Sequence record: NC_021531.1
Length of the DNA stretch: 64,000 bases
Reading direction: 5' to 3' (one strand)
The notes below the pieces were generated by a model. The model was not told the origin of the DNA and did not search any database. It saw only the letters and a list, made by a program, of their open reading frames with translations. A program made the position numbers and the translations under genes. Positions 3,788-13,038 of the stretch are shown piece after piece (the stretch's first letter is position 1; each line of letters opens with the position of its first letter).

Positions 3788-4831
3788 ATGGCTCTTAAAT
3801 TGACGTGGAAGAACAACAACGTTGTTGCTAACACAATCAAAATCTATCGTGGGGATGCTAAGCTCGACCCGGCTAACCTCCCCGCACCTTTGGTGGAACT
3901 TACTAACGGTGAAAACGAGTGGGTTGATACTACCGCAATCTACGGCAAGACGTATTTTTATATCTTAGCTGTAGTAACGGCAAACGATTTCATCCCGACT
4001 GCGAACCAGCAAATTCTGGTTGCGGATAACCGTGGTGCAGGTTCGTCAACACTGTTGTACGGTGATGACAATATGGGTTACTTCGGTCAAGTGTTGGCAG
4101 CGGACTTCCTGACCAACCTCGACATTGTGGCGGCGGCTATTACTACGGCTGGCCTGCCGTCTGCACTGGTGCAAGCACCATGGCATAAGTTCGTTCGCAA
4201 AGGCAAAATCCTGTATATGCCGTCAGCGCCGTTTGGTCAGGTGACGTACAACGCGCTGTATGCAGCAGGATTGGTTTACGGTGTGAATGCCTCAGCACCG
4301 CCGAATGCCTCAATCGGCGACCAGGCTGCGGTTAACCAGTATCGCCCTATTGAATTCAAAGGCCAGAAGTACATTCCTCGTTTGATGCGTGGTTTCAGTG
4401 ATGGTCCGCAAAACGACTGGCAGGGGTGGAACTGGGCACAGGACAGCATTCCTGACAACATCAACCCTATTGGTACTGTCAACGAGTTCAACGACCTGTT
4501 CTTCAGTACGCTGAGTTTCGTTCCGGAATGCCAACGCACTGAAAACTACGCTGAAGGCGATATTGCGACTTACGTAGGTTATGCCGGTTCAAGTTATGAC
4601 GACGTTAACGTATATCACCGTCCTAGCCGCATTATCTGCCAGGAGCGTAATACTGCAAACGTTAATGTGTTGGCTCGTGCACGACGCAGTTGGAACTACG
4701 GAAGTAACTCTGTTGGCTACAACAAAAACTATTTGCAGTTTATGTCTCCGCAATCGCCAACTCAGTCGTCAACGTGGGTGCCGGTGCTTGAACTTGAACC
4801 ACAAACCGCAACTGTCGCACTGAAGGGGTAA
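3788..4831 (+). CDS. Virion structural protein (paralog family, Fn3/Ig-like N-terminus)
   Basis: 347 aa, SD AAGGA. LTW..IKIYRG..YFYILAVV N-domain, then GYFGQV..WHKFVRKGKILYMP..LYAAGLVYG. Confidence 0.7.
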   Translation: MALKLTWKNNNVVANTIKIYRGDAKLDPANLPAPLVELTNGENEWVDTTAIYGKTYFYILAVVTANDFIPTANQQILVADNRGAGSSTLLYGDDNMGYFGQVLAADFLTNLDIVAAAITTAGLPSALVQAPWHKFVRKGKILYMPSAPFGQVTYNALYAAGLVYGVNASAPPNASIGDQAAVNQYRPIEFKGQKYIPRLMRGFSDGPQNDWQGWNWAQDSIPDNINPIGTVNEFNDLFFSTLSFVPECQRTENYAEGDIATYVGYAGSSYDDVNVYHRPSRIICQERNTANVNVLARARRSWNYGSNSVGYNKNYLQFMSPQSPTQSSTWVPVLELEPQTATVALKG

Positions 4832-4834
4832 TCC

Positions 4835-5722
4835 ATGGGTGTTAAATTAAATTGGGATGACCAGTCAGACCAGGGTCTTGATAAAATCGAGATATATCGC
4901 GCTGCCGCAAAAGCCGATACGCAGAAACCGGAGAATCTCCTGACCACTCTCTCAGGTTCAGCGACCAGTTACGAAGACATGACGGTCAAAAACAAAAACC
5001 TCTACTACTACCGTATTGCCGCTGTTAAAGGTGACGAGTACGCGTGGGGTGAACCGCAGTTAGCGGGGTATTTCTCAGAAACTGGGCCGGGTCGTGCGGT
5101 ACCGATACGCGGCGACTGGAATGCGGGCTTCATGGACCGTATCCCTGTGGCTAACTTTATTACCGGGCCTGACCTGCGTACCAAGGTTCCGGAAATGAAC
5201 AGCATGGGTGGTCTCTGGAACCCGAACAACTGGTACAAACTCGTCCATAAAGGCAAGATTATTTTCATGCCTGACTCTAACCTTGTGTCCGCCTCGTGGA
5301 ATGAACTGTACGCTGCGGGACTGGTGTTTGGCGTAGACGGGTTTGGACAACTGCCTACAGGTGTCGCGGGATCGAAAAACCAGAAGTATGTGATTAATAT
5401 CAACGGTCTGGAATATATCGTTCGTCTTCCTCGCCTGTCACCGTTACCGACCACGCAGTATATCACCACCACCGACCAACTGGTTGGGAGTGAGTGGAAA
5501 GACTGTATCAGTCGTCTGGTGTCTGCCAGCACTAACAATGATGCGACTGCGCGCACCCGCCTTTACGACCAATCAACCTCGTGGCCATCAGGTGGTCCGC
5601 ATCTTGCGAATGCGACACAGTGCGCTGTTGTGGTTGCGGCTAATAGCGAGAAAATCGGCACTCCGGTTAATATCGGTACCCGAATGACGACGCCGCTCGT
5701 GCTTGAGTTGATTATGCCGTAA
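4835..5722 (+). CDS. Virion structural protein (paralog of the preceding gene)
   Basis: 295 aa. LNW..IEIYRA..YYYRIAAV and WYKLVHKGKIIFMP..LYAAGLVFG align by eye with 3788..4831. Confidence 0.7.
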   Translation: MGVKLNWDDQSDQGLDKIEIYRAAAKADTQKPENLLTTLSGSATSYEDMTVKNKNLYYYRIAAVKGDEYAWGEPQLAGYFSETGPGRAVPIRGDWNAGFMDRIPVANFITGPDLRTKVPEMNSMGGLWNPNNWYKLVHKGKIIFMPDSNLVSASWNELYAAGLVFGVDGFGQLPTGVAGSKNQKYVININGLEYIVRLPRLSPLPTTQYITTTDQLVGSEWKDCISRLVSASTNNDATARTRLYDQSTSWPSGGPHLANATQCAVVVAANSEKIGTPVNIGTRMTTPLVLELIMP

Positions 5723-5778: not shown

Positions 5779-6318
5779 CACGACAGCTGACCCCACTACT
5801 CCTTTAAAGCCGTCGAGCTCACCGTCGGTTGTGCTGAGGTCGGTTTTAACGATCTCCTGCGTAACCATATACGTTGCCAGTACACCCGGAAGGTATTTGA
5901 TGTTGCCATCTTTGACGCTGACAGTGATAACCTTCACACCGTCTTCACCGTCAGTGCGGTCGATAGTCAGCTCGCTCAGCGCAAACGCATCTTGCGTTCT
6001 ATCGGCGGCTATGACTTCGGCGTTAACGAATGCCAATACCTCTTCGTCGGTGTCCCAGTCTGCCAGGTCATCCGTTACTGGTTTATCGACAACGAAAGTG
6101 GGGGCCAGACGGGTGTAGTGCAGTTCTAGCGCACCGGTGAAGTGGACACTTTCTGCTTTCGCGGTGATGGTCAGTTTGCTGTTACGGCCAGCACTGCCAC
6201 CTTCCAGAGTTGCAACTGCACCAAAGTCAACATCAGCAACAGTCAATGCCTGCGCCAGAGAAGAGTTTTTAGTGTTAAACAGTGCAACCAACTGCTCTTT
6301 AAAAGATTTAATTGCCAT
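5776..6318 (-). CDS. Virion structural protein
   Basis: 180 aa, SD-like GAGGGA. HFTGALELHYTRL domain shared with ORFs 69 and 2249. C-terminal DLSTTDGELDGF. Confidence 0.7.
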   Translation of the reverse strand: MAIKSFKEQLVALFNTKNSSLAQALTVADVDFGAVATLEGGSAGRNSKLTITAKAESVHFTGALELHYTRLAPTFVVDKPVTDDLADWDTDEEVLAFVNAEVIAADRTQDAFALSELTIDRTDGEDGVKVITVSVKDGNIKYLPGVLATYMVTQEIVKTDLSTTDGELDGFKGVVGSAVV

Positions 6319-6363
6319 GATGCAAATCCCTCAGTTAACTGGTGGGTTGACGTACCTCGTCAT

Positions 6364-6403
6364 AAGAAATTAAAGAACCGCTATCCCCGTAAAGAGATAG
6401 CGG
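6364..6403 (-). terminator. Probable intrinsic terminator after the peptidase gene
   Basis: CCGCTATC/GATAGCGG stem followed on the minus strand by TTCTTTAATTTCTT. Confidence 0.6.
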
Positions 6404-6408
6404 CGCGA

Positions 6409-6933
6409 CTACAGGTGCTGAACCAATTTATTCCACTCAATCGGCTTCTGCTTAATCACCGTAACCACCCCACGGGTGGGCGACCACACAGTTAAGTCCG
6501 GCTGATTACGCACATCGAAATGGAACCAACTGATGTCGGTTTCAAGGAAGTGAATGAACGGGAACTCATTCGGGTTTTGTTGGATATACGCACGAACAGC
6601 TTGCGGGGTATAGTGCTGGAAGGTTAAGTCCATCGCACCGCCGTATTTGTGCATGCTGTCAGAGCTCGCGTAAAGCTCCAGGGCGCGTTCACGGTAATTG
6701 CCGCCCTTCGGTTGCTCTTGATTGATAAAGAACTGTAGCGTGCGTAAGGAGCGCTGTGTCATGCCTTTAGAAGGCGAGTTCACAATAATCGGTCCGAACT
6801 TGTTACGTAATTGCTGTAACGTAACCATTACCAGTGGGTTGATAATGTACGCAGCGTTAGCACCACGACGTTTAATGACATCGGGCGGCATCAGCTCTTC
6901 GAGTTTAAACTGGTTGGGGTTTGGCTGAAACAT
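6409..6933 (-). CDS. Peptidase M15-like zinc peptidoglycan peptidase
   Basis: SMHKYGGAMD (HxxxxxxD) and WFHFDVR motifs, plus TLQQLRNKFGPIIVNS. Start reassigned to MFQPN (6933), which has an AGGAG SD. Confidence 0.75.
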   Translation of the reverse strand: MFQPNPNQFKLEELMPPDVIKRRGANAAYIINPLVMVTLQQLRNKFGPIIVNSPSKGMTQRSLRTLQFFINQEQPKGGNYRERALELYASSDSMHKYGGAMDLTFQHYTPQAVRAYIQQNPNEFPFIHFLETDISWFHFDVRNQPDLTVWSPTRGVVTVIKQKPIEWNKLVQHL

Positions 6934-7597
6934 TCGTCTCTCCTGCGACTGGAATCGGGTACGTGAGGAACGCACGTTTAATGTTTAGGTAATGCACGTG
7001 AGCTTGCTGGTTGGTACGCACCATGGTCATATCTTGCGCGGGGATACCAACTGTTGGGAACTCACGAACAAACTCGTAATTGGCGTTCATGTTAAACGTG
7101 TACGCATTCGGCTTAAAGTAAATACATCCTTTGTTGTCATCAATAAACGACGTCAACCCAAAATGCTTTACTGCCAAATAAAAGGACTGTCGCGTAATCC
7201 AGTTCACGCCTAGTGCTTTCATGGCATACAAGAACATCCGGTCAGCAAAGTTCTTGTCAATCATGGCGTTCAATTTACCCGCCCCGTCGTTGTGGTAGTA
7301 ACCAATGATAGGGATTTTCTGATACAGCAAATCGTGCAACGCGGCAGCCGGGCCGTAATCACCTTCCGGTTTAAACAGAAACTGTAGCTGTGTGGGAATA
7401 GACGCTAAATCGGTTACAAACCCTTTCGGGGCAACCAAATATAAAGGCTTGTCGGCGCTCAGACCGGTTTCCTTTAAAATGACCTCGAGACGTGTCGGGT
7501 CGTCCTCATACAGACCAGCCAATGTAAAACCGAAGGTGTAGTCTTTCGTTAAGATAAACCACTGCTTATCCAAACGACAATACTCAAACTTGTCCAT
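6905..7597 (-). CDS. DUF1353 family protein
   Basis: PKGFVTDLASIP, AAALHDLLY and ADRMFLYAMKALGV motifs. Start MDKFEY (7597) with an AAGGA SD. Confidence 0.8.
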   Translation of the reverse strand: MDKFEYCRLDKQWFILTKDYTFGFTLAGLYEDDPTRLEVILKETGLSADKPLYLVAPKGFVTDLASIPTQLQFLFKPEGDYGPAAALHDLLYQKIPIIGYYHNDGAGKLNAMIDKNFADRMFLYAMKALGVNWITRQSFYLAVKHFGLTSFIDDNKGCIYFKPNAYTFNMNANYEFVREFPTVGIPAQDMTMVRTNQQAHVHYLNIKRAFLTYPIPVAGETNVSAKPQPV

Positions 7598-7629
7598 TAT
7601 GGTTATCCTTCGATTATTAAGGGGGGTCA

Positions 7630-7665
7630 TAAAAAAAGAACAAAGGTGTGCCCCGAAGGGCACAC
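7630..7665 (-). terminator. Intrinsic terminator closing the radical-SAM cassette
   Basis: On the minus strand: GTGTGCCC-TTCG-GGGCACAC then CTTTGTTCTTTTTTT (C-UUCG-G tetraloop). Confidence 0.9.
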
Positions 7666-7668
7666 ACT

Positions 7669-8325
7669 TTACAGCTCAGTTACAAACGTTGCTTTTAAAC
7701 CTTTGAGAGCGGTGTAGTCTCCGTTCTCAGCAGCAATCCGCGCAGTCTGTTTAAAGTCCGTCAGCTTTTCATGCAATGCGTTGGTGCGTGCAACGATAGC
7801 TTCATTCAACGCTTTCAATTCATCCAGCGTGAAATCGAACTTCGCGTTGTTAGCATCCACCCAGTAACCCGGGCTTTGTTCAGTGCTCAGGTAACGCTGA
7901 ATAGCTGCCAGCGCCTTTTCGTCAGTTTGGTAATTGCGCCCTTTAAACTCAAGAGGAGCAACCACCGCTTCACTGTACGCCTGATTTACCCAGCTGATTA
8001 ACTCAGTCAGTAAGCCATAGCACTTGCCGCGCGTAGAAGAACGCTCTGCCTTATGCTCGGCCAAATCAACGCCCAGCACTTCAGAGACGAACTTGTGCGC
8101 CGCTTTAATGGTGAACTTCACTTCTAACGGAGAAAGACCCTGAGTTGTCAAACCTGCGCTTAACTCTTCATCAGTCATCCCGTCCAGCAGGCGGTAGTGT
8201 GCCAGGCGCGCGAGCGTAGGGTTCCACGTCGCATCACTCAGTTCACCATCGACAAACTGTCCATGACGGTCCACCAGTTTACCGCTGTTATAGAAGCGGT
8301 CCTTTATTTCGCTATTACTAAGCAT
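7669..8325 (-). CDS. DUF4376-domain protein (tail-fibre assembly chaperone-like)
   Basis: C-half EFKGRNYQTDEKA..YWVDANNAKFDFTLDELKALNEAI matches the DUF4376 pattern. Overlaps the upstream gene by 22 nt. Confidence 0.7.
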   Translation of the reverse strand: MLSNSEIKDRFYNSGKLVDRHGQFVDGELSDATWNPTLARLAHYRLLDGMTDEELSAGLTTQGLSPLEVKFTIKAAHKFVSEVLGVDLAEHKAERSSTRGKCYGLLTELISWVNQAYSEAVVAPLEFKGRNYQTDEKALAAIQRYLSTEQSPGYWVDANNAKFDFTLDELKALNEAIVARTNALHEKLTDFKQTARIAAENGDYTALKGLKATFVTEL

Positions 8326-8867
8326 TCAGTTTTCCCCACGATGCCAATGTCTCTCAGCAGACCGTAGTCGAGGAATTGGTAGTCCCGGGCCAAGTCATAC
8401 TGCCAGACAAGATTGTTAACCTTTTTGTCGTCTGGGGTTTCAGTGGCCTCATTGAAGACACCAACCAAATCCCAGCACTCGAAATAGTTACACTGTTCCT
8501 GAGCATGACGAACAATCTTAATTTTGTTGTTCGGGAACGACTGCGCCAGAGCCACCAGAGAACCGATGCCCTTACCGTGTTTGGTACGATAAAGGATGGT
8601 CATCTTGGTCGCAGGCGTATCGAGGATACGCTGCTCCAGACCGGTGTTGCGCAGCTCAGCGTTAGCCAGTGAGTTATGGCCTTCTTCCACGCAGTCCAGC
8701 TCAACCATCACGTTCAGAGAATGACGGATCACCAGCTTCTTCACTGTTTCCGTGTAGTTCTCTGCTTTACACAGCAAAGACACGTCAAACAGTTTGTGCT
8801 TAGACAGGAACGCGTCAAGCAGCGTGGTATCAAGCCTCGTAAAATTGTGAATTAGCAATGACTTCAT
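8304..8867 (-). CDS. Hypothetical protein, probable accessory factor of the CXXX/radical-SAM cassette
   Basis: 187-aa ORF overlapping both neighbours. No recognised motif. Confidence 0.6.
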   Translation of the reverse strand: MKSLLIHNFTRLDTTLLDAFLSKHKLFDVSLLCKAENYTETVKKLVIRHSLNVMVELDCVEEGHNSLANAELRNTGLEQRILDTPATKMTILYRTKHGKGIGSLVALAQSFPNNKIKIVRHAQEQCNYFECWDLVGVFNEATETPDDKKVNNLVWQYDLARDYQFLDYGLLRDIGIVGKTECLVIAK

Positions 8868-10188
8868 TGGTCTTTTCCTGAGATTTGTGTGCGTGAGGTT
8901 GTTCGTGCGTTACTGGTTCTGCAATTGCAGGCTTGGCCAGCTTAGGCAGTTTGTTTTCCTGCGAGGCGCGAACACGGCAGTCATAGCAGTTACAGGTCAG
9001 CTCTTTGAACTGATTACCGTAAGAACCAAAACGACGTTCCCACCACTGTGCAGTTAACAGTTTAGCCGTAGTCCAACCGCACTGACGACGTTCGCCGTGA
9101 TACTGCTTACGTGCTTCTTCTTCACCGTCGCCATTTTCATACGCGGCAGCTACGCAAGATGCACAGATGTGTTTCGCTGGGCAGCCCATACAAGCGTCTG
9201 GGTAAGACTTCCACTGAGTCTTAACTTCTTCCAGCAGTTTGCCGCCGTCGGTGTTAACGATTTCACGACCAACAAGCTTAGCAATTGCCTGACGGGTGGT
9301 TACCGTAGACATGAAGCGGTTACAGCCGTAGATGTTACGGTCGAAGCCGAGACAGGTCATGTGAACGGTCGTACCGCAGTGTGGGCGCAGACGGTCTGGG
9401 TTATAACGTACCTGATCGTCGTGCAACAGTTTTTCACGCCAGTCTGGGTTCCACAGGTCATCGACGTTCATACCGTTTGGAGTGATGTGCCCCATTTCAG
9501 CAGTCGGGTCTAAGTGCAGCCCTTTACCAATCCAGTATTCCAACACTTCAATCATCTGGTTAGAAATACCCAGCGCCATGTCACGAGGAATGATATCTTC
9601 AAATACCATGTTCCCGTAGATGGTACCACCGCCCGATTGGTCGATTAACGACTTCATGGATGCAGCGTAATGCTTGAGCGTGTCGTGGGTAAAGGTCGCT
9701 TTGATACCGAGGTCGTTAATCTTCATCGACTTCAGATAGTGATACCCTTCCAGCGCTTTCTCGTACGAGCCTTTGCGCGAGGTAGTGAAGATACGGTGTT
9801 TGTCATGCGTCTCCGGCAGACCATCAATCGATACGCCGATAGAGAGACGCTTATACCAGCGCTCGATAATAGAACGGTTCAGCGGCTTATCAAACAGCGT
9901 GCCGTTGGTGGAGATAGAGAACATGTACGGGCGGTTATCCCGCGCCGCCAGCTCTTCTGCAGTTTCGAACGCTGCAATCAGCAGCTTCGGCTGCAGGAAC
10001 GGCTCACCACCGATGATATCGATGATAGCACCATCCACACCCGGCTTACCTTTATCGCGGTCAAAGCAGGCATGGATAAAGTCAACCACGTCTTCAACGC
10101 GGTTGTTACGCGGGAACTTGCGCTCGTAGCAGTAATCGCAATCGAGGTTGCAAGACAGGTTGGTAACTATTTGGTACGTTACGTCCAT
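8830..10188 (-). CDS. Radical SAM/SPASM peptide maturase (CXXX-repeat target type)
   Basis: CNLDCDYC triad, IIGGEPFL, ISTNGT, VSIDG. SPASM cysteines CGTTVHMTC..YGC and CMGC..HICASC..RQC. Extra CNCYDC near the C-terminus. Confidence 0.92.
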   Translation of the reverse strand: MDVTYQIVTNLSCNLDCDYCYERKFPRNNRVEDVVDFIHACFDRDKGKPGVDGAIIDIIGGEPFLQPKLLIAAFETAEELAARDNRPYMFSISTNGTLFDKPLNRSIIERWYKRLSIGVSIDGLPETHDKHRIFTTSRKGSYEKALEGYHYLKSMKINDLGIKATFTHDTLKHYAASMKSLIDQSGGGTIYGNMVFEDIIPRDMALGISNQMIEVLEYWIGKGLHLDPTAEMGHITPNGMNVDDLWNPDWREKLLHDDQVRYNPDRLRPHCGTTVHMTCLGFDRNIYGCNRFMSTVTTRQAIAKLVGREIVNTDGGKLLEEVKTQWKSYPDACMGCPAKHICASCVAAAYENGDGEEEARKQYHGERRQCGWTTAKLLTAQWWERRFGSYGNQFKELTCNCYDCRVRASQENKLPKLAKPAIAEPVTHEQPHAHKSQEKTNEVIANSQFYEA

Positions 10189-10198
10189 AATGGCCGCC

Positions 10199-11074
10199 TT
10201 ATGCTTGTGGCAAATTCAGGTAGTTATGCAGATACTTGTAAGCATCCACGCCGATGATAGAGGCTATTTTATTACAGCCTGAGTCCACTAACCATTCCGT
10301 GTTCTCACGCAGCCCAATATCCCCATTCGGTTCAACCATCTTCAGCTGACCACATGCGTTACAGTTCATGTTATCGAAGAACTTCTCTAAACGCAGTACC
10401 GTCGAGTAACCGTTCGCCGCGTTCATCTCAAACATCTGGGCTTCGAGCCGTTTCCATCCGTAGATGAAGTTCAGCACGTGGTCCTGATTGAGAGGTTTCG
10501 GCATTAACTTGTCGAACGTCAGCGATAACGCCGCCAAGTTAAGATGATGCAGAGAACTGTGCAGTTGAAGGATGTCTTCGTACCAGCGAGGTTTACTCAC
10601 CATCTCACGCGTCAATACGCCCCACACAGTAACCTTTTCCAGCTCATTGATTACTTCAAAAGCCTCTTGAGCACCTTCGTCAATGAATGCACGCAGGCTA
10701 CGCTCACCACCTTCGTACGCATCGATAGACACGACGATATGGTCAAACGTTTTCAAGAACTCAAGTTGCGACAACTTGAGTTTACGACCGTTGGTGAATA
10801 GCAGGTGTTTTGCGGAAGGAGCGCCACGCCGTGCTTCTTCAACGAAGTCAACCAACTTCGAATAGGAGAGCAGCGGTTCGCCACCAGTCCACAGGAATTC
10901 CTCTACCAGAGGATTTTCTTTTATAATGTCCACCATTGCCTCTTTATGTTTTGTTTTAGAGACATCGCCCTTAGCCATGTGAGCTGCCCCTCCACAGAAG
11001 GAGCAGTTTAAGTTACACTTAGCCGTTATTGCAACGTCAATCATCGTTGCGGATGATTTAGGGGTATCGTGCAT
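10199..11074 (-). CDS. Second radical SAM enzyme (short, Twitch-like C-terminus)
   Basis: CNLNCSFC triad, TGGEPLL, LFTNG, VSIDA. C-terminal CNACGQLKMVEPNGD..GC. Confidence 0.88.
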   Translation of the reverse strand: MHDTPKSSATMIDVAITAKCNLNCSFCGGAAHMAKGDVSKTKHKEAMVDIIKENPLVEEFLWTGGEPLLSYSKLVDFVEEARRGAPSAKHLLFTNGRKLKLSQLEFLKTFDHIVVSIDAYEGGERSLRAFIDEGAQEAFEVINELEKVTVWGVLTREMVSKPRWYEDILQLHSSLHHLNLAALSLTFDKLMPKPLNQDHVLNFIYGWKRLEAQMFEMNAANGYSTVLRLEKFFDNMNCNACGQLKMVEPNGDIGLRENTEWLVDSGCNKIASIIGVDAYKYLHNYLNLPQA

Positions 11075-11999
11075 CCGGATTTTTTCCCCATTGCTTGCTC
11101 ATAAACGAGAAGAGCGGGTCATCTTTACGAACATCTTCGCCGGGAACAATGAGTTTCGGGTCATTATACGCCTGCAGGATGGCGTCTAAGATTTTATTCC
11201 GGCTATTGATTCCGTTAAGTTCTTTCAAACTTACTTCACGGCGGATGAACGAGTCCATTACATGCTGCTCTTCGTCCGAAAGGAGACCGGCCTCGTTGAC
11301 TTTACCCACCAAGAAGGTCATTACTCGGTGCAAGTCAGCTGTGGTATTCGGTTGCTCCCCGTACTCGCTTTGAATCAGGTAGTTCGTCCACGGTTTGCGC
11401 AGTCGCTTGGTAATCTCGTGTGCATCCGTAATCGCTTCCCATCTCATACTACGATGGTTCCACGTAATTTTATACGAATACGCCATGAGGTCAGCCAGCG
11501 TATCGATGCCGAGTTCTTCGTAACCATCGACCGCATAGTAGCGTTCGGTATTGAAGTAATCGTCATCTGGCACTTCATCGCAGTCAACAACGGTGTAGTA
11601 GAACGGGAAGGCTGATGGGTATTCCCAGTTCCAGCCGCGTTGAATCATCGGCTTCATGTTGTTTTCTTTAAACGATGCAAACAGCAGCTCCAGCGGTGGA
11701 GCGTAGTTAAGTACCGCATCGGTAAAGTAGTATTTGTCGTTCACTAATTTACCGACGTAGTCTGTCGTCGCACCGGTACACTTGATGATTTTCACATTCA
11801 GTGTGTCAGAGATGTTGAACTCTTCCAGTACCGTTGACTTATACAGAATGTCGCGAGGACGCAGACGTGGGAACTCAACCGGGTTCATTGCCAGCAAACG
11901 CAGACGGTCATTGACGTGGTCATTAACCGCGTCAGGTAGCCCGATGTGAATCGGGTAGTTGAATGTAGTTCGGAATGCGTAATGCGCATTACTCTTCAT
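11058..11999 (-). CDS. Hypothetical protein in the radical-SAM cassette
   Basis: 313 aa, strong SD AAGGAG, overlaps the rSAM gene by 17 nt. Confidence 0.7.
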   Translation of the reverse strand: MKSNAHYAFRTTFNYPIHIGLPDAVNDHVNDRLRLLAMNPVEFPRLRPRDILYKSTVLEEFNISDTLNVKIIKCTGATTDYVGKLVNDKYYFTDAVLNYAPPLELLFASFKENNMKPMIQRGWNWEYPSAFPFYYTVVDCDEVPDDDYFNTERYYAVDGYEELGIDTLADLMAYSYKITWNHRSMRWEAITDAHEITKRLRKPWTNYLIQSEYGEQPNTTADLHRVMTFLVGKVNEAGLLSDEEQHVMDSFIRREVSLKELNGINSRNKILDAILQAYNDPKLIVPGEDVRKDDPLFSFMSKQWGKNPDARYP

Positions 12000-12232: not shown

Positions 12233-12634
12233 CTACGGTCCAGAACAGCCGGAACAACCCCCAGAACATGACCCGGAACAGTTACCAGAGCATCTGCCTG
12301 AACACGTACCAGTACACGTACCAGAACACGTACCAGAACACGTGCCTGTGCAACCACCGGAACAACCACCCGCGCAACCACCTGAACAGCTCGACGAACA
12401 GCTAGAGCCACAGGTTGCACTACAGGTTCCGGTACAGCCGCCAGAACAGCCTGCGGAGCAAGTCCAGCTACACGTACCTCCGCAGTGGTAATAGTTCGCG
12501 TCATGACCTGCTAAGCGGTCTACGTTATTGGTAGTCTTGCCCGCAATGTACGATTGGACACCGGCTTCGGTTTTCAGAGCAGCGGCTTCAATGTTGTCCA
12601 GTTGGCCTTTTACAGCGTTTAATGAGACTGCCAT
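12233..12634 (-). CDS. MAVSLN-leader CXXX-repeat peptide B (putative rSAM substrate)
   Basis: 133 aa from MAVSLN (SD GAGGGG), 21 Cys in CXXX repeats, ends CSGP. Confidence 0.88.
   Translation of the reverse strand: MAVSLNAVKGQLDNIEAAALKTEAGVQSYIAGKTTNNVDRLAGHDANYYHCGGTCSWTCSAGCSGGCTGTCSATCGSSCSSSCSGGCAGGCSGGCTGTCSGTCSGTCTGTCSGRCSGNCSGSCSGGCSGCSGP
12301..12348. repeat. Four near-perfect tandem 12-bp units (AACACGTACCAG) inside peptide B
   Basis: aacacgtaccag / tacacgtaccag / aacacgtaccag / aacacgtgcctg. Confidence 0.85.
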
Positions 12635-12645
12635 GGTAATCCCCT

Positions 12646-13038
12646 CTATTGTGGCCCCGAACATCCGCCTGAGCAACTTCCTGAGCAGTTACCTGAACAC
12701 GCCCCACCACAACTCCTGCCACAAGCACCAGAACATGATGAAGAACACGCGCCGCCGCACGTACCCGTACAGCTACCTGAGCAACCTCCCGAGCAAGAAC
12801 TAGTACACGTGCCAGAACATGACCCGGAGCAGTTACCGGAGCAGCTGGAACAACCGTGGGAACAACCTGAAGAACAAGACCAACTACAACTACCGTTGCA
12901 GCGGATTTCTCCGGGGGACATCCCGCCTAAATTATTTGCGTTATACGCTTTTGTGGCCACCTGTCCATCAACCGAAGCGCCAGTTGCAATAGACAGTCTG
13001 GCCATACGCGCATTAACGTCATTGAGTGAAACGGCCAT
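12646..13038 (-). CDS. MAVSLN-leader CXXX-repeat peptide A (putative rSAM substrate)
   Basis: 130 aa, SD AAGGA, 21 Cys in CXXX repeats, ends CSGPQ. Confidence 0.88.
   Translation of the reverse strand: MAVSLNDVNARMARLSIATGASVDGQVATKAYNANNLGGMSPGEIRCNGSCSWSCSSGCSHGCSSCSGNCSGSCSGTCTSSCSGGCSGSCTGTCGGACSSSCSGACGRSCGGACSGNCSGSCSGGCSGPQ

Follow-up and report, generated by a model that had tools for sequence, protein, structure and literature searches.

Several described families of radical S-adenosylmethionine (rSAM) enzymes resemble the phage locus considered here. One is a pairing already catalogued from comparative genomics, in which a SPASM-type rSAM enzyme (NCBIfam TIGR04115) is encoded beside a protein with a Cys at every fourth position (TIGR04114). 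In the PapB/PapA pair (freyrasin; NF047865), the SPASM enzyme PapB builds small thioether rings one after another, at Cys residues separated by three residues. It holds the substrate Cys on its auxiliary cluster AC1 and recognizes the leader through a recognition element (RRE) typical of pathways for ribosomally made, post-translationally modified peptides (RiPPs) (PMC12373016). CteB, from the CteB/CteA pair (SCIFF/thermocellin; Protein Data Bank (PDB) 5wgg and 5why), also forms thioethers and carries an N-terminal recognition domain. The His-Xaa-Ser system pairs two rSAM enzymes, HxsB (SPASM) and the small HxsC, with a repeat-bearing substrate. Here, we describe two rSAM genes, rSAM-1 and rSAM-2, within a 64,000-nucleotide window of Cronobacter phage CR5 (NC_021531; 223,989 bp; adding 124000 to a window position gives the record position). 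CR5 is a jumbo phage of the genus Derbicusvirus and a relative of Salmonella phage SPN3US. The two genes occupy the center of a tightly packed minus-strand gene run that also encodes three Cys-ladder proteins, A, B, and C (Table 1). We consider it most likely that the enzymes cross-link these proteins before virion assembly, and on balance we lean toward viewing them as the catalytic part of a tail-fiber maturation cassette that acts on the ladder proteins.

The association between enzyme and ladder extends well beyond CR5. A scan of viral contigs with an rSAM-1 alignment recovered 309 relatives, from which 80 loci were kept. A ladder open reading frame (ORF) was defined as a run of at least six Cys spaced 3–5 residues apart (up to 71 Cys were seen), on the same strand and within a few kb of the enzyme. 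By this definition, a ladder ORF accompanies the rSAM-1 relative at 77 of the 80 viral loci, at identities down to 25%, and the three exceptions include two short contigs. As a control, bacteria and archaea were scanned with one genome per species. A ladder ORF was found at nine of ten loci with a strong rSAM-1 relative, versus one of 67 loci with other SPASM enzymes; the association is therefore specific, and the detector rarely fires by chance. In Termititenax/Margulisiibacteriota, proteins of ~660 aa with ladders of 58–69 Cys are encoded beside a 399-aa rSAM enzyme (L089, 6408-8411; L090, 6674-8659; L091, 3886-5874). Five Firmicutes bins (L092, L094, L095, L096, and L098) encode rSAM variants of 706–728 aa, with ladder peptides of 52–88 aa downstream in four of them and none in L094.

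The ladder proteins themselves are paralogues that all begin MAVSLN. In protein A, a 46-residue N-terminal region precedes 21 Cys that are spaced by four in 19 of 20 cases, and B likewise places 21 Cys at a period of four, again in 19 of 20 spacings. Across the two, the N-terminal region spans 46–50 residues and ends in Leu-x-Gly shortly ahead of the first Cys, while the C-terminal ladder spans 84 residues in each. The core of the ladder in A and B consists almost entirely of Ser, Cys, Gly, and Thr, with at most one Lys or Arg, and neither Asp nor Glu occurs in the ladder cores of A, B, and C or of their counterparts in SPN3US and phage Derbicus. Protein C has the same N-terminal region followed by the first ladder unit alone (two Cys in CR5 and Derbicus, four in SPN3US). 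Both A and B, located about 1.2–2 kb upstream of rSAM-1 on the same strand, pass the NCBIfam model TIGR04114, named 'Cys-rich repeat, radical SAM target' (cut-off 20 bits). All three match only PHROG 6085, a family of unknown function, and a ladder protein query returned no PDB relative at E ≤ 1. A tblastn search of the window with the N-terminal regions recovered only the three paralogues and no anchor common to other CR5 virion proteins.

A, B, and C are genuine genes that evolve under purifying selection. Compared with Derbicus, nonsynonymous and synonymous divergence (pN/pS) is 0.14/0.77 for A, 0.14/0.67 for B, and 0.08/0.74 for C, and all 21 Cys of A and B are aligned. A Shine-Dalgarno sequence precedes each ATG, directly after the preceding stop codon, and three-gene sets of equal lengths are present in Derbicus and SPN3US. 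An origin of the ladder genes as an artefact of repetitive DNA was rejected: the 12-nt periodicity is weak (72–85% matches), pN is far below pS, the Cys are conserved, and ribosome-binding sites are present. Protein C was likewise rejected as a broken gene, its length being kept at 68–69 aa in all three phages. A and B are unannotated in the RefSeq and GenBank records of CR5, where a plus-strand gene, CR5_157 (12591-12803), is called instead and is probably spurious. The ladder repeat generates long ORFs in several frames on both strands. In SPN3US (L002, 6094-7123; NC_027402/JN641803), the region carries a single annotated gene, gp100/SPN3US_0166, which runs in the wrong frame over B; the annotation lacks both ladder gene A (130 aa) and the 68-aa short paralogue C.

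The first-pass annotation of the window, made from the letters alone, described two different rSAM enzymes in tandem, and both ORFs are present at the expected places and lengths (452 and 291 aa). Each has a CX3CX2C triad, at residues 13/17/20 in rSAM-1 and 20/24/27 in rSAM-2, and passes PF04055 (48.4 and 46.1 bits, respectively; cut-off 29.5). They share only 27% identity over 123 aa (E 0.006) and are thus truly different enzymes rather than recent duplicates. In rSAM-1, seven Cys (C271, C289, C333, C336, C342, C345, and C370) are invariant among 19 aligned homologues, down to 23% identity. This set corresponds to a SPASM domain, which is defined by seven or eight conserved C-terminal Cys, and TIGR04115, a model of 359 positions, aligns with rSAM-1 over its positions 4–336; no match to rSAM-1 at E ≤ 0.01 came from Pfam's SPASM model. 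The last spacing of the set, C-x2-C, is one residue shorter than in the usual SPASM pattern. Of the features initially attributed to rSAM-1, the triad, the SPASM Cys, the extra C-x-C-x-x-C motif, and the tail are all present, but the last two are confined to the SPN3US-like clade. They lie in a C-terminal extension (residues about 385–452, window 8830-9030), where the motif occupies 399/401/404 and the tail, of low complexity, is conserved in its last residues; more distant rSAM-1 relatives lack this extension. Close homologues (54–90% identity) are found on contigs of SPN3US-like jumbo-phage size or on short fragments, and more distant ones (23–38% identity) on other large contigs.

Neither enzyme carries an N-terminal RRE, as had been anticipated from the early position of the triads: these start at residues 13 and 20, with no preceding domain. 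Consistent with this architecture, rSAM-1 aligns to CteB (5wgg) only from CteB residue 106 onward, and hidden Markov models (HMMs) of families that possess a recognition domain align from their positions 85–121. The best NCBIfam matches of rSAM-1 are PapB (117.6 bits; cut-off 340) and TIGR04115 (112.9 bits; cut-off 350), both of which it fails. TIGR04115 is the first or second match of rSAM-1 and the first match of all ten viral relatives tested, which score 634, 586, 391, 385, 274, 220, 218, 188, 157, and 144 bits, so that four of ten pass. With CR5 at the lower end of this continuous range, rSAM-1 is thus a divergent relative at the edge of the TIGR04115 family that is also related to PapB. 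Unlike true members, it lacks the 30–70 residues that precede the triad. By sequence, the nearest solved structure is CteB (E 1.2e-7), although the SCIFF maturase model is matched at only 46.7 of the required 425 bits. The match to HxsB is 56.3 bits (cut-off 370), and matches to anaerobic sulfatase maturase (E 1e-13) and to structures of anaerobic sulfatase-maturating enzymes (anSMEs; E 0.003) were also obtained. The fact that the CR5 version fails these thresholds, lacks a recognition domain, and adds two proteins to the set separates it from the TIGR04115, PapB, and SCIFF systems.

These comparisons suggest a mechanism. The substrates would be A, B, and C. Eight Cys are needed for full ligation of two auxiliary clusters; the seven conserved in rSAM-1 leave one site open. 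We propose that rSAM-1 binds a ladder Cys at this open iron, as CteB and PapB do, and, within the host cytoplasm, cross-links the ladder along its length through sulfur-to-carbon (thioether) bonds. rSAM-2, with a single putative three-Cys auxiliary site, may add a second modification to the same proteins, and the 313-aa protein CR5_155 encoded between the ladder genes and rSAM-2 could replace the missing substrate-recognition domain or serve as a scaffold. The modified proteins would then be incorporated into the fiber/baseplate apparatus, contributing rigid elements resistant to reduction and proteolysis. In this way, a stapled C-terminal fiber module could arise in the cytoplasm, whose reducing conditions would preclude disulfides.

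The chemistry is probably thioether formation, judging from the relatives of rSAM-1. The strongest alternative keeps the structural role and changes the reaction: the ladder would be a metal- or iron–sulfur-binding array, or would form disulfides after lysis, while the rSAM enzymes perform, for example, epimerization, oxidation of Cys or Ser, or inter-chain cross-linking. T4-type fiber tips provide a parallel in their His-x-His iron ladder, and locus L005 (a 40-kb contig) encodes a 258-aa fiber-like ladder protein (4682-5458) with repeated His-x-His units directly before the ladder. The absence of acidic acceptor residues from the ladder cores, the anSME matches of rSAM-1, and a weak match of rSAM-2 to the epimerase YydG also point in this direction. 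However, the top-ranked relatives of rSAM-1, PapB and CteB, form thioethers, the count of seven rather than eight auxiliary Cys fits a site that binds substrate Cys, and the strict pairing of ladder and SPASM enzyme argues for covalent tailoring over metal loading alone. We therefore regard this alternative as unlikely.

The proposed role in tail fibers comes from relatives in which the ladder is fused to a recognizable fiber protein. In locus L028, a P2-like contig, the ladder forms the last part of a 384-aa protein whose first 144 residues match the Pfam tail-collar fiber domain PF12571 (Phage_tail_fib, E 1.8e-40). Ladder proteins of loci L026, L027, L031, and L032 (267–482 aa) match tail-fiber PHROGs, and in the fiber-type proteins of L026, L031, and L032, the CR5 A/B/C family, PHROG 6085, matches the C-terminal ends. 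Across all 16 proteins examined, the ladder ends 3–12 residues before the C-terminus. L028 encodes, in sequence, a baseplate J-like protein, a gpI-like protein, the fiber with the ladder, a 313-like protein, rSAM-1-like and rSAM-2-like enzymes, a PHROG 1158 chaperone, and the sheath, and the whole cassette thus occupies the fiber/fiber-chaperone slot; the PHROG 1158 chaperone closes the cassette in both CR5 and L028. The cassette comes after a GpJ-like tail-tip protein in L005 and after a 2257-aa fiber-like protein and a DUF4376 gene in L006, where the DUF4376 gene adjoins the ladder gene. In L039 and L049, which belong to true TIGR04115 lineages, the ladder genes follow tape measure, tail, and baseplate-wedge genes. 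Two further features of L005 are three rSAM genes in a row (6306-9134) and, downstream, a 180-aa Cys-containing protein (10876-11418) with a TSP1_ADAMTS (thrombospondin-type) Pfam match.

The same evidence bears on a second alternative, in which A, B, and C are RiPP precursors, each with an N-terminal leader and a Cys-rich core, that mature into a released antimicrobial, signaling, or host-manipulating peptide as an accessory trait. The family names in NCBIfam ('peptide maturase' and 'rSAM target') favor it, as do the small size of the proteins (69–133 aa), an N-terminal region of 46–50 residues ending in Leu-x-Gly that can be read as a leader, and the bacterial relatives, which include 52–88-aa ladder peptides beside larger rSAM enzymes. 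Against this, the cassette sits within a fiber/baseplate gene run and keeps its synteny in all of the roughly 20 related jumbo-phage loci examined, the ladder is fused to tail-fiber proteins of 267–482 aa in no fewer than five other lineages, and the P2-like contig repeats the same cassette in its fiber/chaperone slot. Searches with Pfam, NCBIfam, and PHROG, together with the record annotation, revealed no protease or exporter within the cassette or next to it; remote homologues could have escaped them. We accordingly rate a diffusible product as quite improbable, and the candidate substrates are not free bacteriocin-like peptides. They lie in a tail-fiber module, a context missed in the first-pass annotation, and relatives have the ladder as the C-terminal part of tail-fiber proteins.

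Published virion data can be read against the maturation model. The SPN3US particle proteome (86 proteins) contains gp167–gp173 and lacks gp163 (rSAM-1), gp164 (rSAM-2), and gp165 (313-like), which fits enzymes and helpers that act before assembly. Virion mass spectrometry of SPN3US was blind to the ladder proteins themselves because their ORFs are unannotated and their cores, with no more than one Lys or Arg, yield no tryptic peptides. The virion location of the CR5 ladder proteins is accordingly suggested by their relatives and by gene position.

The smaller enzyme, rSAM-2, is more difficult to place by sequence. As first described, it has the triad and a short Cys tail, C238, C241, and C267, all invariant among eight homologues. 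These three are the only Cys after the core, too few for a SPASM domain. Its start in RefSeq (CR5_154, 10199-10978, 259 aa) is a later ATG, 32 codons downstream, that would delete the triad; the homologues support the longer ORF. The shortened length of 259 aa recurs in database cluster P0099. NCBIfam matches are all below threshold and comprise PapB (49.6 bits, the best), HxsC (46.7 bits, second best; cut-off 268), tungsten-cofactor maturase, viperin, and MoaA, with relatives behaving likewise. An AlphaFold2 model of rSAM-2 (predicted local distance difference test (pLDDT) 71, predicted template modeling score (pTM) 0.72) is least confident in the loops that bear the Cys. Its best Foldseek hits are CteB, SkfB, TigE, SuiB, and PqqE (E 3e-9 to 3e-7; CteB at E 3e-9 with TM scores of 0.62–0.65), ahead of viperin (E about 1e-6) and anSME, and a profile search of PDB sequences ranks TigE, CteB, SkfB, and ChlB first, with MoaA lower. 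Three conserved post-core Cys and the high rank of SkfB (6efn) recall the 'twitch' rSAM enzymes, although the twitch model NF033640 is matched at 31.8 of the required 170 bits and the cluster site of rSAM-2 remains putative, situated as it is in low-confidence loops.

Taken together, the data support the assignment of both proteins as peptide/protein-maturase-type rSAM enzymes, with the sequence of rSAM-2 by itself pointing weakly to this class. An identity as QueE, NrdG, or MoaA was rejected, in agreement with the first-pass annotation, which had named clustering with any of these as the result that would speak against it. rSAM-2 scores 27.8 versus 260 bits for QueE, 33.4 versus 131 for NrdG, and 38.4 versus 284 for MoaA, and none of the three appears among the 25 best NCBIfam matches of rSAM-1. 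The annotation had also pointed out that no nrdD or que partner is adjacent, and indeed no nrdD, que, or moa gene is annotated within the 64-kb window. It is very improbable that the substrate of either or both enzymes is something other than protein (a nucleotide, cofactor, or cell-envelope component) and that the ladder neighborhood is incidental: rSAM-2 and its relatives do weakly match viperin, MoaA, QueE, and NrdG models (27–55 bits) and viperin is listed by Foldseek, but those matches fall far below cut-off and are limited to a common core of about 100–150 residues, peptide maturases outrank viperin and MoaA in both fold and profile searches, the partner genes just named are missing from the annotation, and rSAM-2-like genes occur, among the loci examined, inside ladder cassettes only, once fused to an rSAM-1-like domain.

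Using HMMs built from our own alignments, the viral loci were split into two groups. Group I comprises 29 loci in about 10 lineages, including CR5, and its rSAM-1-like enzyme starts at the triad. Group II comprises 54 loci with a single longer enzyme, and the four tested all pass TIGR04115. An rSAM-2-like gene is present at 27 of 29 Group I loci and at none of the 54 Group II loci; a 313-like gene is present at 28 of 29 Group I loci, at none of the Group II loci, and at none of 80 bacterial loci. A natural fusion was found in L031 (8131-10191), where a 686-aa protein has triads at residues 23 and 299. Its N-terminal half scores best with the rSAM-2 model and its C-terminal SPASM half with the rSAM-1 model, and the gene adjoins one for a 451-aa tail-fiber-like protein that ends in a Cys ladder. 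Through co-occurrence and fusion, rSAM-1 and the ladder proteins are functionally linked to rSAM-2 and the 313-aa protein. Some SPN3US-like contigs (L016, 5545-6456; L024, 5546-6457) carry two rSAM-2 paralogues, one that precedes rSAM-1 and a second inserted between A and B.

The earlier proposal that two chemistries act on the same substrate, for example Cys thioethers plus Trp or epimerase chemistry, holds in part. Shared substrates are very probable given the co-occurrence beside ladders and the L031 fusion. A Trp-specific rSAM-2 is unlikely. A Ser-Trp pair after the second ladder Cys (residues 51–53 of CR5 A) is found in eight lineages, all with an rSAM-2-like gene, but L006, L028, and L031 have an rSAM-2-like gene and ladders without Trp, and Trp-directed chemistry was rejected as a rule. 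Among described systems, His-Xaa-Ser is the most similar in architecture to CR5, with a SPASM enzyme and a smaller rSAM enzyme encoded alongside a repeat-bearing protein, and the relatives of rSAM-2 match HxsC as well. It differs in its repeat (H-x-S rather than C-x-x-x) and in being bacterial, uncharacterized, and without a known link to phage tails.

The 313-aa protein belongs to a small family, with 21 representative clusters in 1.8 billion proteins, and a reverse census starting from it returned SPN3US-like cassettes only. Its AlphaFold2 model is confident (pLDDT 89, pTM 0.86) and has no neighbor in the PDB (best E 0.099); a search of BFVD gave its own orthologue alone. The protein may therefore adopt a new fold, and its role in recognition or as a scaffold is a proposal.

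Several observations weigh against the maturation cassette as we read it. rSAM-1 falls far short of the TIGR04115 and PapB cut-offs (113 and 118 versus 350 and 340 bits), and rSAM-2 matches viperin, MoaA, and HxsC as strongly as PapB, so that genomic association and fold ranking are the grounds for assigning it to protein modification. The carboxylate-bearing acceptors to which PapB cross-linking has so far been limited, CXXXD/E or the C-terminus (PMC12373016, PMC10739248), have no equivalent in ladder cores free of Asp and Glu; the PapB rule cannot apply, and the acceptor chemistry would have to differ. In PDB and BFVD searches, the 313-aa protein shows no fold like a known recognition element. 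The CR5 ladder proteins match no tail-fiber family, as only their relatives do, and we infer the modification chemistry from homology and the presence of ladder proteins in virions from relatives and gene position. Finally, the 80 viral loci do not count as independent cases: Group I, with 29 loci, represents ~10 lineages, and many Group II loci are near-duplicates.

Table 1. Genes of the CR5 fiber/baseplate run around the two rSAM genes, listed in the direction of transcription (window coordinates).
Feature	Position	Strand	Basis or remark
Giant fiber/baseplate protein CR5_159, 1900 aa	14348..20050	-	ORF; heads the gene run
Coiled-coil virion structural protein CR5_158, 399 aa	13094..14293	-	PHROG 2163 'virion structural protein', E 5.7e-100; coiled-coil-type Pfam matches
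Cys-ladder protein A, 130 aa	12646..13038	-	TIGR04114, 31.5 bits; PHROG 6085, E 5e-35
Cys-ladder protein B, 133 aa (start ATG at 12634)	12233..12634	-	TIGR04114, 33.7 bits; PHROG 6085, E 9e-38
Short paralogue C (CR5_156), 69 aa	12011..12220	-	Alignment; PHROG 6085, E 1.6e-23
Accessory protein CR5_155, 313 aa	11058..11999	-	PHROG 8030
rSAM-2 (CR5_154), 291 aa	10199..11074	-	PF04055, E 8.2e-12
rSAM-1, 452 aa	8830..10188	-	PF04055, E 1.5e-12
187-aa protein	8304..8867	-	PHROG 7988, E 2.9e-86; start overlaps the end of rSAM-1 by 38 nt
DUF4376 protein, 218 aa	7669..8325	-	Pfam PF14301, E 9.4e-12
Tail assembly chaperone-like protein CR5_150 (RefSeq start 7597)	6905..7663	-	PHROG 1158 'tail assembly chaperone', E 1.8e-63; Pfam DUF1353

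Upstream of the genes in Table 1 lie two further giant virion proteins and a baseplate assembly protein. A Pfam search with CR5_159 gave no match, but its SPN3US counterpart, gp168, was identified by virion mass spectrometry as a tail protein and 'baseplate/tail fiber candidate' (PMC5694885). More broadly, SPN3US gp168–gp170, the counterparts of the CR5 giant proteins, are tail proteins described as 'baseplate/tail fiber candidates' (PMC5694885, PMC5105663), and gp168 resembles phiKZ gp131, which is sited at the baseplate periphery (PMC5694885; PMC5105663). The CR5_158 homologue, SPN3US gp167, is abundant in the virion and has no head assignment in the published virion data. Downstream of rSAM-1, the 187-aa protein is kept at the same place in SPN3US and Derbicus. 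A terminator-like hairpin (7665-7646) directly follows the DUF4376 gene, suggesting that the cassette is transcribed as one unit ending at ~7650. Other strong terminator-like hairpins are located at 6404-6377, after a 188-aa gene, and at 5762-5735, a bidirectional one between convergent genes; all three are consensus matches only. The label 'late region' given in the first-pass annotation appears consistent with the strand and with the position of the genes at the end of a virion/fiber/baseplate gene run.

The position also invites comparison with known fiber assembly factors. Tail-fiber assembly helpers of the Tfa type are non-enzymatic folding factors, and fiber tips can be metal-stapled. 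The CR5 cassette occupies the corresponding post-fiber chaperone position and ends, as in L028, with a PHROG 1158 protein; it differs in having two radical enzymes interposed. It likewise departs from the TIGR04114/TIGR04115 pair by the addition of a second rSAM enzyme and the 313-aa protein (at none of the 54 true-member loci) and by the location of the substrates in a tail-fiber module. Relative to PapB, the best NCBIfam match of both CR5 enzymes, it lacks a detectable RRE.

If these enzymes do cross-link the ladder proteins and the products enter the fiber apparatus, this would be, to our knowledge, the first radical-SAM modification of a virion structural protein. Within the limited collection of literature searched, no paper linked rSAM enzymes to tail fibers or characterized TIGR04115. 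The closest precedent that came up is a remark from 2010 (PMC2938197) that proteins of the tail-collar family are encoded in some dioxygenase operons.

A broader interpretation, which we offer tentatively and place somewhat below an even chance, is that RiPP-type radical SAM cross-linking builds structural parts of phages. The ladder would be a stapled C-terminal fiber module, and TIGR04115, instead of being a bacteriocin pathway, would be largely or originally a family for phage tail-fiber maturation. In jumbo phages, it would take the form of a distinct machine of three proteins: a SPASM enzyme that lacks a recognition domain, the second rSAM enzyme, and an accessory protein of new fold.

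If the proposed maturation of tail fibers is correct, it would point to unannotated or mis-framed genes in many phage records, including those of CR5 and SPN3US, that were hence invisible to proteomic studies. It would account for the two conserved 'radical SAM superfamily' genes of all SPN3US-like jumbo phages, unexplained since their first annotation, and would give a biological role to an enzyme and substrate family known from genome mining alone. It would also provide a new enzyme set, in which a SPASM enzyme without a recognition domain works with a partner of unknown fold and tolerates ladders of 8 to more than 70 Cys. In this context, the CR5 cassette would join RiPP enzymology and phage host recognition, two fields that have so far stood apart.

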